Origin: Wallemia ichthyophaga EXF-994
Lineage: Eukaryota > Fungi > Basidiomycota
Length of the DNA: 32,000 nucleotides
Direction: 5' to 3'
NCBI RefSeq assembly: GCF_000400465.1
Contig: NW_008806294.1
Coordinates: forward strand, 112,958 to 144,957
Shown piece after piece: positions 12,100-29,924 of the stretch. The notes under the pieces were generated by a model. It was not told the origin of the DNA and searched no databases. It was given only the letters and a program-made list of their open reading frames with translations. Position numbers and translations under genes: made by a program. Within the stretch, counting starts at the first letter, position 1; each line of letters starts with the position of its first letter.

Positions 12100-12731
12100 A
12101 TCCTATTTTCACTTGATCGTAATGGTTTAAGTCATTTCAATTCTCTTTTCTCAAATTCTTTATAATCACGCCTTTTTTATGACAAATCCGTGATAATTTT
12201 CTTTTTGTAGTGTTTCATACTATTCTAATATCCTTTATAACACCTACTAAAATATTTTTTCATTTCTATTATTCCGCCGCATTTCGGTGCTAAATTCCAA
12301 AAATTTTCATTATTAAGCCGATTGGCAAGGTATTTACTAGAGTGATATTTGTAATACAAATGATTATTAATATGACTAGCTTATCTATAATTGCTCGGGA
12401 TCAATAATAAAATTCCATTCTCAGCAAGGTATGGGAGGCCAACGAGCAGGGACGAGAGAGAGATGGATTAGACGATTACAATTTGCGGTTGCTTGTAGAC
12501 TACTTGACAAAGTTACAAAGTCGCCACAGCAAAACTCGGCAGCAAGTATAACGCTCAATGAATTTACATTGAGCAGTAAATAAATATATCAAAATACACT
12601 CCAAGATTCCACTAATATTATTTTATATTTTAAAATTCTTGTTTCTTATTTTTGACTTGTGTCATTGCCCGCCAATCATAATCTTCGCATTTTGCAGATT
12701 CCTTCATAATCACCTCCACCAGCAAACCCCA

Positions 12732-17954: not shown

Positions 17955-18391
17955 ACTGTGTTTATTTTAACACTCCCCTCGAACACCCCAAGCATTATTT
18001 ACGTTCTACGTACATTCACAATCTCTTTGTATTATAGTGATATCAGCAATCCATTCAAATGTTTTCTTGTGACGCGCCAGTTTGGGAACGAATGCTACAA
18101 ATGATACGAATACTACGAATGCTATAAATACGACGCAGGGATAGAAGGAGCATACTGCGGAATGAGCCTTGGCAATACTATCCGCGACGTACGTATGTGC
18201 CCCTTCAATCAGTGCATGGTGTCACTCGAGGTAGAAGCTAAATCACCTTGATTATACGCAACACAAGATTTGGCGAACGTCCTAATACATTTCGTAGTAC
18301 AGAATCGAACCTATCTATTACACTCTAGAATAGCACAAAAAAATGTCTTCAGCAGTAGCAAAGGTTGAGGAAAATTATGATTAAAATTCTT

Positions 18392-18398
18392 AAAAAAA
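18392..18398 (-). terminator. RNA polymerase III terminator (T7)
   Basis: TTTTTTT on the - strand, 6 nt after G37 of the permuted tRNA 5' half. Confidence 0.7.
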
Positions 18399-18404
18399 TC
18401 ATAG

Positions 18405-18480
18405 CCGTAGTCGAATACTCTACCATTGAGCCAGCCGGCCGTGGTGACCGACGCAGGGCTCGAACCTGCAACCTTTCGAT
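18405..18480 (-). tRNA. Circularly permuted tRNA-Arg(ACG): 3' half (18480-18445), CCAC linker, 5' half (18440-18405)
   Basis: 3' half ATCGAAAGGTTGCAGGTTCGAGCCCTGCGTCGGTCA precedes 5' half GGCCGGCTGGCTCAATGGTAGAGTATTCGACTACGG. Rejoined, they form a complete 72-nt cloverleaf: acceptor GGCCGGC/GTCGGTC, D stem GCTC/GAGT, anticodon stem TTCGA/TCGAA, loop CTACGGA, T stem GCAGG/CCTGC. Confidence 0.88.
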
Positions 18481-18491
18481 ATCAGCTACTC

Positions 18492-18502
18492 CCATTGAGT
18501 TA
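18492..18502 (-). promoter_or_regulatory. A-box-like element upstream of the permuted tRNA
   Basis: TAACTCAATGG has one mismatch to TRGCNNARYGG and lies 25 nt before the B box GGTTCGAGCC. Confidence 0.55.
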
Positions 18503-18670
18503 TTTTGAACTGAAAGCTTTACTTAAATCAACACAATATAATAAAAGAACAAACTTGCACAAAGAAATGCTCAATTAGTGCAAAACTAATACCTTCAGTT
18601 ATGTGGGAACATAGACACTAGAAAATATCTACGTGCTGAAGTAGAGTTTTTAGATGCACAAAATCAAAGT

Positions 18671-19729
18671 TTAGGAAGTCGACTTGTAAGTCCACTCGCA
18701 AGCGCTATGCCACCTGTGCAAAACAAGAAAAAACATGTGTTCAAACCACTTGGTATCTGATATAGATATCTGATATAAATAGTTAACTCCACGACGATGA
18801 CAAAATGCTAAAGTATGATATGATATCCCTAAGTTGGTATGCTTTGAGTTCTCTGTCGTGACAATCTCCTGCCAATGACCACCTTCAGTCCTTGTAAGTG
18901 CGGCACCAATAAATATGGTCTCTGAAAAGGCGATCGTCGAAATCCATCTTGTACTCCATAGTATGCAGATGGCAAAATACGCACTCGACCCACAACTTTG
19001 TAAGACAGGTAAAGTTCTGATCATAGAGCGCATTTCTAAACTGCTCTATCCACACGAGCGCAAATCTATCATACGCGACAGAGGTAGAGTCAAGTAGACT
19101 ACCGAAATTTATGTAGAGGGATTCCACACGCGGGTAATTTACCTTGAGGATGGAAGCCAGACCCGGAATGAGTGTTGGCTGTGCAGCGCCAAAGCCCATT
19201 CTGAGGTGAGTGACAGTGGTGAGTGCTGGTAATTTCTCGAGATGGTGAAGGTCATCACAAGCCATCTCGAGCGTAGTGACACGTTTGAGCTTGTTGTTAA
19301 TCATCACAGAGGTTGACAGAACTTCTGCCTTGAGTTGGCCATCGACCTCGCTGTCGTCATTGATGTTGAGTCTCAATTTCTAAACAAAGTAAGCACATCT
19401 GAGACGCAGGGCTGCGATCCTACCTCTACGCTCATACAGATATGTTTATCGTTGAGTAGCTGTGTCAAGCTGACCAATTGCCGGCTTATTTCTTTGGGAG
19501 TGACAGGCACGAATCTAGAGATGCCGAGATAAGACAGCGATGGGGAAACGTTGAGAGTTTTGAAAAGAGCGTTGTAGCTGAGAATGCGCAGGGTTTTGCA
19601 TGTAAGTGTGAGTGCGAGTGGGGAGATATCGACGATCATTTCCAGGATCTCAAGCGGAAGCTTGCCGAGGTGGCAGGTGAGCATGTAGCCTAAGCTATTG
19701 CGCGGCAATTGCACGGCTCTTGACAGCAT
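18671..19729 (-). CDS. F-box-like protein (start and 3' end uncertain)
   Basis: LGKLPLEILEMIVDI...TCKTLR is F-box-like. Intron 19423-19380 joins the two ORFs. The stop is either 18885 or, after one more intron, 18671. Alternative start at 19684. Confidence 0.5.
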
Positions 19730-29414: not shown

Positions 29415-29539
29415 TCCTTTTAGAATCTTGTATTATAATTCATTGATCGTGCAAGCATATCGTTAATCTTAAAAAGTACGCATGCAAAATGCGATTGAGT
29501 TCGCTAATCTTGGGTGCGCCAAAAGAATGCAAAAATATT

Positions 29540-29637
29540 AGCCCCACGCGGGGCTCGAACCCGCAGCCTTGTGATTAAAAGTCACCCGCAGCCTTGTGAT
29601 TAAGAGTCACACGCTCTACCGATTGAGCTAGCGAGGC
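29540..29637 (-). tRNA. tRNA-Lys gene with a duplicated anticodon arm (CTT, then TTT)
   Basis: GCCTCGCTAGCTCAATCGGTAGAGCGT[GTGACTCTTAATCACAAGGCTGCGG][GTGACTTTTAATCACAAGGCTGCGG]GTTCGAGCCCCGCGTGGGGCT. Length is 98 nt = 73 + 25. Followed by T5. Confidence 0.85.
29561..29610. repeat. 25-bp tandem duplication inside tRNA-Lys (24/25 identical)
   Basis: Copies at 29561-29585 and 29586-29610 differ only at the wobble base (29579 vs 29604). Confidence 0.95.
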
Positions 29638-29924
29638 TAGTTATCATGGCTTATTAACTTCAAATTATAATCAGATTGCAGCCTTAGACAAATTTTTTTC
29701 ATTCCAAAGAACGCTGTAGCACATCAAAGGACTATTTTGCCATAGAAATGCTTGTATATAACAAGCTAATGTCTAATTCGAATAGATATTATCTGATATC
29801 TGCCCCCTCAATGCTCCTATATTCCACATGACATCATGAGCATATGATCATAATGTAGTGTGAAAAAGCGCAGTCAATCGCAGTCGCAGTTAAACATCAA
29901 CGTTCATAACAAGAAGCAATCAGA

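Follow-up and report, generated by a model that had tools for sequence, protein, structure and literature searches.

We report what is most probably (roughly 80%, in our estimate) a functional type II (37/38) circularly permuted nuclear tRNA-Arg(ACG) gene, a unit conserved across Wallemia, on the minus strand of the window (the whole 32,000-nucleotide stretch of DNA analysed here). The two halves of the tRNA share a strand but stand in reversed order, the 3′ half first, with a linker of 1–4 nt between them; this holds for the window and for three named Wallemia species. The original prediction of a real permuted tRNA-Arg(ACG) gene in a fungus is supported by the anatomy of the locus, its behaviour under rotation, its conservation and its covariation. 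Judged by sequence comparison, the Wallemia permuted tRNA-Arg(ACG) is a genuine, evolutionarily maintained gene family.

Read on the minus strand, the unit is composed of a leader, tRNA positions 38–73, the linker CCAC, positions 1–37, the trailer CTATGA and a run of seven T. The leader (18481–18516) includes a vestigial tRNA 5′ half and ends in GUAGCUGAU; we assign it to the conserved gene unit on the basis of a 93% unit match and a constrained fold. Directly before position 38 it reads ...CAGTTCAAAATAACTCAATGGGAGTAGCTGAT. The 3′ half with its T arm occupies 18445–18480 and is identified by its sequence, by comparison with relatives and by rotation. From 18480 down to 18445 it comprises A38, TCGAA (39–43), AGGTT (44–48), GCAGG (49–53), TTCGAGC (54–60), CCTGC (61–65), GTCGGTC (66–72) and A73. 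The B box GGTTCGAGCCC, recognized by sequence as an internal Pol III promoter element, covers the T-loop region at 18456–18466.

The linker (18441–18444) intervenes between A73 and G1. The 5′ half, which follows at 18405–18440, provides the 5′ strand of the acceptor stem, the D arm, the 5′ strand of the anticodon stem and C32–G37. Read from 18440 to 18405, it is made up of GGCCGGC (1–7), TG, GCTC, AATGGTA, GAGT, A, TTCGA (27–31) and CTACGG (32–37), and the anticodon ACG lies at 18408–18406. Bases 1–4 of the trailer (18399–18404) are predicted to pair with the leader, lengthening the anticodon–leader helix, and the T7 run (18392–18398) is a presumed Pol III terminator by its sequence. A 3′ half, a 4-nt linker, a 5′ half, a 6-nt trailer and T7, with the break at 37/38 and an Arg(ACG) identity, had been proposed beforehand, and this description proved exact to the base.

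Joining the halves at G37–A38 yields a 72-nt tRNA-Arg(ACG) with a canonical cloverleaf and a sensible anticodon. All of its 21 cloverleaf pairs are standard (three of them G–U), just as expected from the claim that the halves are complementary in every stem. The conserved tRNA residues U8, A14, G18G19, A21, U33, G53, T54 T55 C56 and A58 are present in the window copy. The D arm is there as described, but the uniqueness ascribed to it did not stand, as the same D arm occurs in Wallemia tRNA-Arg(UCU).

The original prediction also held that standard scanners would miss such a gene, and this is what we observed. In the native orientation of the window, ARAGORN called no tRNA anywhere. At gathering thresholds, the sole Rfam match in the whole window was a Lys gene at 29540–29637. 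A permissive scan with the Rfam tRNA model (RF00005) recovered the locus only partially, at 14.4 bits against a threshold of 29, which falls short of a conventional gene and is the result to be expected if the gene is permuted. The best Rfam match in native orientation was YrlA (RF02553), which scored 35.2 bits (E 4.7e-6) for the window copy and 29.4 bits for that of W. hederae; both scores are below the gathering score of 69 bits and do not place the locus in that family.

The outcome changed upon rotation. When the surrounding sequence was rotated at each T-loop motif and submitted to ARAGORN in search of an intron-bearing tRNA, the locus was called cleanly as tRNA-Arg(acg), broken at position 37. 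Rotated T-loop candidates numbered 413 in ~190 kb, and a tRNA that depended on rotation was obtained at only four loci, all of them Arg; the remaining two calls were ordinary genes, one for Ile(AAT) and one for an intron-containing Val(AAC). Since only the true Arg loci were rotation dependent among the 413 candidates, the observation is exact and far beyond chance. tRNA prediction in the W. ichthyophaga genome paper was carried out with tRNAscan-SE 1.23. Because neither ARAGORN nor the Rfam tRNA model recognises the natively oriented permuted gene, fungal tRNA inventories compiled with colinear scanners may be incomplete and may lack an isoacceptor that is actually present.

The search for relatives started from JGI metagenome contigs, which we scanned for the 22-nt 3′ end of the window tRNA. 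It returned one Wallemia contig (L013), which was permuted, and three chance matches in bacterial coding sequence. This contig carries identical halves in the permuted order, but its linker measures 1 nt and its leader and trailer are not those of the window. The mitochondrial carrier encoded next to the unit matches its W. mellicola CBS 633.66 counterpart at 100% identity. A conventional Arg(ACG) gene was not encountered among the scanned JGI contigs, whose coverage is too thin to infer absence.

We compared the carrier loci of the W. mellicola reference (L015), W. hederae (L014), four W. ichthyophaga strains (L020–L023) and a further W. mellicola-type metagenome contig (L025). In all of them the gene order is carrier, hydrophobin and, on the opposite strand, the permuted Arg(ACG) unit. 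Copies at this orthologous locus come from W. mellicola CBS 633.66, two W. mellicola-type metagenome contigs, W. hederae and the four W. ichthyophaga strains, so that the permuted order is found there in at least seven independent assemblies and three named species. Synteny in sister species, suggested earlier as a check, is thereby confirmed for one orthologous locus shared by W. mellicola, W. hederae and W. ichthyophaga. As the window copy sits at a separate locus beside the 5-aminolevulinate synthase gene (ALAS), the unit is present at no fewer than two genomic sites in the genus.

The linker is not constant among the copies: the window and W. hederae share CCAC, W. ichthyophaga has CTAC or CTGC, and W. 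mellicola has one nucleotide, A. The B box GGTTCGAGCCC is invariant across all intact copies. In EXF-994, the W. ichthyophaga reference strain, the carrier-locus copy has an extra T in the T loop (B-box region) and a different linker; the extra T may reflect either an error of sequencing or a genuine defect. Beside the W. mellicola copy we found no LTRs that would hint at insertion of a Pol III-targeted retroelement.

Between species, the 72 nt of the two halves are 93–100% identical, whereas the upstream, leader, trailer and downstream segments match at 43–60%, which is the noise level. The one exception in the flanks is the leader common to the window and W. ichthyophaga (82%); over window positions 18402–18516, which take in 36 nt of leader, the units of these two match at 93%. 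At 5 of the 72 positions, W. hederae departs from the other sequences. One of these changes lies in the D loop, and the other four make up two compensatory pairs, each with its partners in opposite halves: U–A to C–G at 28:42 of the anticodon stem and C–G to A–U at 3:70 of the acceptor stem.

With the halves aligned in genomic order, every sequence keeps 21 of 21 pairs, and all 42 of the 42 cells pair. Slid controls, in which the partners were shifted by 1–3 columns, gave 26–45% pairing and zero compensatory double changes. In a neutral simulation with five random substitutions, the probability that at least four fall in stems and all pairs survive was ~0.001. We used these two controls because a column-shuffle control was powerless (121/500), there being just two distinct tRNA sequences. 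The covariation argument consists of two pairs in one divergent species, W. hederae, and on this small sample of two distinct sequences it points to selection on the structure formed between the halves.

Such compensatory changes are characteristic of an RNA that depends on pairing between two separately encoded halves; they would not be expected in a decaying relic. We saw none of the marks of a pseudogene, namely lost pairing, loss in relatives and flank-like divergence; the pattern was the opposite. The same applies to decay of the locus in relatives, which had been named beforehand as an observation that would speak against the gene: the permuted order is conserved and the changes across the halves are compensatory.

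To describe the putative splice sites, we folded the anticodon arm together with the trailer and leader of six precursors, forcing only the anticodon stem. All six adopted a common architecture consisting of the 5-bp anticodon stem, a small internal loop and a leader helix. In the loop, C32 U33 (A34) stand opposite leader positions −2 and −1 and A38. In the helix, leader positions −3, −4 and −5 pair with C35, G36 and G37, and the helix runs on into the trailer; in the constrained fold of the window copy, positions −3 to −9 are paired with C35 G36 G37 and with trailer positions +1 to +4. Position −3 is G throughout, −4 and −5 are invariably C or U facing G, and −1 and −2 are freely variable. 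Extra leader–trailer helices, built of unrelated sequences, are found in W. mellicola (13 bp) and W. hederae (11 bp). The folding energy of the whole precursor stands out in W. mellicola (z = −3.3) and is unremarkable for the window copy (z = −1.0).

The same fold is formed by a natural intron, that of W. ichthyophaga tRNA-Arg(UCU) (L020, 20888–20995), in which a 3×3 loop of positions 32–34 against −2, −1 and 38 is followed by a 5-bp helix over 35, 36, 37, +1 and +2. We found no strict BHB (3-4-3 bulge-helix-bulge) in the leader and trailer; instead they form a loop plus helix like the Arg-UCU intron, with the predicted 5′ cut site inside or at the end of the helix, unlike in a strict BHB. By the established yeast mechanism, the eukaryotic tRNA splicing endonuclease measures from the mature domain. 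The likeness to the native intron, and not to a strict BHB, would therefore be the relevant one, and a loop plus helix should in principle be adequate for a ruler-type eukaryotic endonuclease. In the modelled folds, the precursor has the appearance of an intron-containing Wallemia pre-tRNA of the ordinary kind, cut open within the intron and closed at the acceptor end.

The comparison with tRNA-Arg(UCU) extends further, since the two genes have an identical D arm and T-loop sequence as well as the same splice-site geometry, and presumably share their enzymes. They differ in that Arg(UCU) has a closed intron loop and free acceptor ends, whereas in the permuted gene the 'intron' is open and the acceptor is closed by the linker. 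Ordinary intron-containing tRNA genes (Val-AAC, Arg-UCU and Lys-CUU) lie nearby in Wallemia, which indicates that the splicing machinery is in use.

Putative Pol III signals accompany the unit in its different copies. A-box-like elements (TAACTCAATGG, TATCTCAATGG, TCATTCAATGG and TAATCCAGCGG) precede the B box by 32–41 nt; they are no more than matches to the consensus, and the element of W. hederae is weak. In the window, the element, identified by its resemblance to the consensus, lies within the leader at 18492–18502 on the minus strand, and the B box starts 36 nt downstream of it. A run of T4–T7 begins 7–19 nt after G37 in every orthologue, and no T4 occurs within the unit.

The window leader also contains a stretch, CTCAATGGGAGTA, that equals the Arg D arm minus 2 nt. 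The window leader resembles tRNA 5′ halves (p 0.002–0.02), and so, significantly, do those of W. ichthyophaga and W. mellicola; no single isotype stands out. From this resemblance, we read the leader as a vestige of the 5′ half of an upstream gene, possibly kept for its A box, and this reading fits the duplication-and-loss model (PMC3978253).

Maturation of the permuted transcript would probably proceed as follows. Pol III would transcribe the unit as a single RNA of ~115 nt, the halves of which would fold into a normal tRNA body with the acceptor stem closed by the linker. The leader and trailer would pair with each other and with C35–G37, mimicking an opened intron-containing pre-tRNA. The tRNA splicing endonuclease would then cut after G37 and before A38, and the fungal tRNA ligase would join G37 to A38, giving a circle. 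Removal of the linker would fall to RNase P and tRNase Z or to exonucleolytic trimming, after which CCA would be added and A34 deaminated to inosine. The 1-nt linker of W. mellicola would demand unusual end processing.

[quoted passage not shown] The acceptor hairpin (1–4 nt loop) and both end-processing sites are already present in the primary transcript, the long leader–trailer helices of W. mellicola and W. hederae would hold the two pieces together, and in the yeast pathway end maturation normally precedes splicing, which counts for this order. We nevertheless consider it unlikely, as a loop of 2–5 nt (A73 plus the linker of 1–4 nt) on a 7-bp stem would make a poor substrate for RNase P and tRNase Z as long as the anticodon side was unsealed, and in the studied algae a linker-retaining circular intermediate has been directly detected (PMC3978253). 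The sequence itself does not discriminate between the two orders of ligation and end processing. More distant from our reading is the idea that the locus is dead and represents a tRNA-Arg(ACG) pseudogene without function, left by rearrangement or by truncation of a tandem duplicate. It is accepted that permuted genes arise when a tandem duplicate loses its outer halves, and intermediates on this route would look alike (PMC3978253); moreover, the leader would pass for a decayed 5′ half, the intergenic slot of the window is a rearrangement hotspot that harbours tRNA-Ile(AAT) or tRNA-Lys(UUU) in relatives, and the EXF-994 copy has its T-loop insertion. A relic is, however, hard to reconcile with halves that stay 93–100% identical while their flanks are randomised and with two compensatory pairs across them. 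It would equally have to explain why each lineage retained a T-run, a B box and a splice-site-like fold from different sequences, and how the unit persisted at an orthologous locus in three species and spread to a second one. The comparative data thus largely refute a dead relic, which we regard as very improbable.

It is hardly plausible, too, that the product is a tRNA-like non-coding RNA that works unprocessed, as a module of the Y-RNA/YrlA type, and that no translating tRNA is made from it. YrlA belongs to a bacterial family tied to Ro/Rsr. It is a tRNA-like module of the same topology, with a terminal stem, T arm, acceptor-like stem and D arm in this order, and the shared circularly shifted arm order is the reason why it gives the best native Rfam match; the leader and trailer do form a terminal stem in Wallemia as well. 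On the other hand, the YrlA scores are far under the 69-bit gathering score (about half of it), and the Wallemia terminal stem has no conserved sequence. What is conserved is a complete anticodon loop split across the ends of the RNA, with C32–G37 and A38 invariant and the adjacent leader bases variable. In addition, the cut-site geometry copies that of a real Wallemia tRNA intron, and the rejoined molecule has all the features of an elongator tRNA-Arg. An assembly or chimeric-read artefact has a negligible chance of being the explanation. One metagenome contig (L026) does have an inverted junction exactly at the expected tRNA segment, but the same order of halves recurs in independent assemblies, namely the JGI W. 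mellicola genome, one JGI and one ENA metagenome, W. hederae and four W. ichthyophaga strains.

Of the origins that we considered for the permuted gene, the most likely is a head-to-tail doublet of an intron-containing Arg gene, the outer halves of which would have decayed; the upstream 5′ half of this ancestral doublet would survive only as the A-box-bearing leader. It is a speculation that the doublet was RNA-mediated, for example by template-jumping reverse transcription of a CCA-tailed, intron-containing pre-tRNA. Template jumping would explain both the A73-CCA-C linker of two lineages and the vestigial upstream 5′ half, yet we leave it as speculation because the linker is not conserved. 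We also considered, and rejected, an encoded CCA or a retro-copy of a mature tRNA: A73-CCA-C occurs in the window and W. hederae only, with CTAC, CTGC or a single A elsewhere, and a linker that varies among species in this way is not a conserved functional CCA.

Wallemia genomes may also contain an ordinary Arg(ACG) gene, which could make the permuted copy redundant. We tentatively entertain, at somewhat less than even odds, a stronger proposal, in which Wallemia lacks conventional tRNA-Arg(ACG) genes altogether. The codons CGU, CGC and CGA would then be read solely through permuted genes, so that the heterotetrameric Sen endonuclease and Trl1/Tpt1 would routinely make and reopen circular tRNA, in a system that would have arisen independently of the algal cases.

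Since 2007–2011, permuted tRNA genes have been reported only from one archaeon, a nucleomorph, a red alga and some very small green algae, and they tend to be treated as a curiosity of algae and archaea tied to BHB-type splicing. A 2014 review places the eukaryotic cases only in unicellular algae and a nucleomorph, and the archaeal ones in Thermofilum (PMC3978253); a 2026 review of tRNA gene repertoires gives the same distribution of unicellular algae, nucleomorph and Thermofilum. Our full-text literature searches for permuted tRNA genes in fungi, Basidiomycota or Wallemia retrieved none. The earlier statement that no fungal precedent was known is thus borne out in the searchable literature, the 2026 review included, within which the Wallemia gene would be the first permuted tRNA gene in a fungus and the first outside algae and one archaeon.

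The Wallemia unit shares with the algal permuted tRNA genes (2007; PMC3978253) the upstream position of the 3′ half on one strand, a short intervening sequence and the 37/38 junction, which is the commonest type in algae. Leader–trailer pairing (predicted in Wallemia) that would present both cut sites, CCA presumably added post-transcriptionally, and a proposed origin from a tandem duplicate with lost outer halves are likewise common to both (2007; PMC3978253). The differences begin with the host, in our case a basidiomycete fungus and hence an opisthokont (2007; PMC3978253 for the algae). The predicted Wallemia cut sites lie in a local eukaryotic-type intron architecture and not in a strict BHB. 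Upstream TATA-like promoters are believed to drive the algal genes (PMC3978253), whereas in Wallemia the B box is preceded by a putative vestigial A box. Finally, only one isoacceptor has so far been found in permuted form in Wallemia.

The genes of prasinophyte green algae and of the Bigelowiella natans nucleomorph (Maruyama et al. 2010) are also eukaryotic nuclear or nucleomorph genes of the same topology, and adjacent partial duplicates in them have been read as intermediates, much like the vestigial 5′ half in Wallemia (PMC3978253). They belong to another lineage and are BHB-based, whereas the conservation of the Wallemia gene can be traced, with compensatory changes, across cultured and sequenced species. 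In Thermofilum pendens (Chan, Cozen and Lowe 2011), intervening sequences are also very short, down to 1 nt as in W. mellicola, and CCA is encoded in them (PMC3978253), recalling the CCA after A73 in the window and W. hederae. The archaeal system differs in its BHB-dependent homomeric endonuclease. Given the alternatives CTAC, CTGC and A, the CCA-like linker of Wallemia is probably not a functional encoded end.

If the permuted reading is true, standard fungal enzymes of tRNA splicing, ligation and end processing can handle a permuted precursor. It would also provide an independent origin in which to test how permuted tRNA genes arise, and would make the circular-intermediate pathway testable near the yeast toolbox, in fungi that are cultured, sequenced and genetically approachable.

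The genes in the window are eukaryotic and of basidiomycete type; they include ZPR1, the intron-split ALAS, COX15, MBOAT and hydrophobins. The permuted unit adjoins ALAS, at a place different from the carrier–hydrophobin–tRNA locus. The GC content of the window is 0.48, close to the 47.5% of W. ichthyophaga coding sequence. With the 93% match of the tRNA units, this puts the window in Wallemia, within or near the ichthyophaga/hederae branch of the genus. The closest metagenome and SRA contigs form two groups. In one of them ALAS is 92% identical and the GC content is 0.39–0.40, and this group shares one sample with the W. mellicola-type contigs; in the other, the identity is 81% and the GC content 0.31.

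The syntenic slot is occupied by a normal tRNA-Ile(AAT) in the distant relative (GC 0.31) and by a tRNA-Lys(UUU) in the closer one, where synteny is broken. The presence of these other tRNA genes and the synteny break mark the slot as a tRNA-associated rearrangement point. We also examined whether the window leader was a relic of the neighbouring Ile gene, as it aligned to the Ile 5′ half of the distant relative (p 0.001). This idea was dropped because the leader is conserved in the W. ichthyophaga unit at another locus (93% for the unit) and because, in a panel of tRNA 5′ halves, it fits the Arg, Ile and Lys D arms equally.

Depending on the lineage, one intergenic slot, which lies 3′ of the ALAS-side genes, contains a different tRNA gene, in each case on the same strand: the permuted Arg(ACG) in the window (~18000–18700), Ile(AAT) in a relative with very low GC content (L001, 15437–15510) and Lys(UUU) in a further relative (L016, 15294–15368). 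Past the slot, the gene order of L016 departs from that of the window, and the contigs of the low-GC relative all terminate just beyond this point. The slot seems to mark a rearrangement breakpoint associated with tRNA genes.

The low-GC relative (GC 0.31) is represented by the ENA metagenome scaffolds L001–L009 (e.g., ERZ28598171 scaffold_330), which are syntenic with the window. Its ALAS and ZPR1 show 81% and 72% identity, respectively, to those of the window, and it is present in dozens of metagenome samples. It may constitute an unsequenced lineage related to Wallemia.

Downstream of the permuted Arg unit of the window, approximately 95 nt from G37 and on the minus strand, lies a second B-box-like motif, GGTTCGATTC (18302–18311, within TAGAGTGTAATAGATAGGTTCGATTCTGTAC). 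The Rfam scan gave no tRNA match at this position. The motif might derive from an ancestral doublet, as a decayed remnant of the 3′ half of its downstream member; alternatively, it might be due to chance. A short repeat array (18088–18129) also lies downstream of the tRNA terminator, at a distance of approximately 280 nt; it comprises four overlapping ACGAATGCTACAAAT-like copies, each 15 nt long and spaced at 9 nt.

At the carrier locus, where a permuted tRNA follows the carrier and hydrophobin genes, we compared the copy of the reference strain EXF-994 (L020, KE007226.1, ~12133–12210, minus strand) with those of three other W. ichthyophaga strains. In EXF-994 the T loop carries one additional T (GGTTTCGAG) and the linker reads CTGC, while in the other three strains the T loop is intact and the linker is CTAC. 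The extra T reflects either an error in sequencing or a defect specific to this strain; in the latter case, EXF-994 must have another functional copy.

Two more contigs cover this locus in other species. The ENA metagenome contig L026, of the W. mellicola type, is 99.7% identical to L025 (a contig of the same type) up to the expected start of the tRNA unit. From that point on, it continues as an inverted copy of sequence located ~250 nt beyond the unit. The rearrangement in this region of L026 (7528–7674) is due either to misassembly, with a chimera formed at a short inverted repeat, or to a genuine inversion by which the permuted gene was removed. The other contig, L024 (Logan SRR25399871, 93 kb), carries the locus of a further species with a window-like GC content of 0.47; its DNA here is ~80% identical to W. 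ichthyophaga and W. hederae alike. It stops within the hydrophobin gene, just before the expected position of the permuted tRNA.

Permuted Arg units also gave sub-threshold matches to the bacterial Rfam family YrlA, with 35 bits in the window (18398–18489, minus strand) and 29 bits in W. hederae (L014, 12420–12519). The cause of these matches is the order of arms in the tRNA-like module of YrlA, which is permuted in the same way. As a fast screen for permuted tRNA genes, one could use a model of the YrlA type or one built for the purpose.

The sole conventional tRNA that ARAGORN (-i) and Rfam detected in the window is tRNA-Lys(CUU) (29539–29638, minus strand; Rfam 56 bits), in which ARAGORN places an intron of 25 nt at the canonical position. 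The intron, ATCACAAGGCTGCGGGTGACTTTTA, repeats the flanking exon sequence in tandem almost perfectly, corresponding to positions 38–53 followed by 27–37, with the anticodon UUU instead of CUU. Judging from this sequence, the intron looks like the product of a 25-bp tandem duplication.
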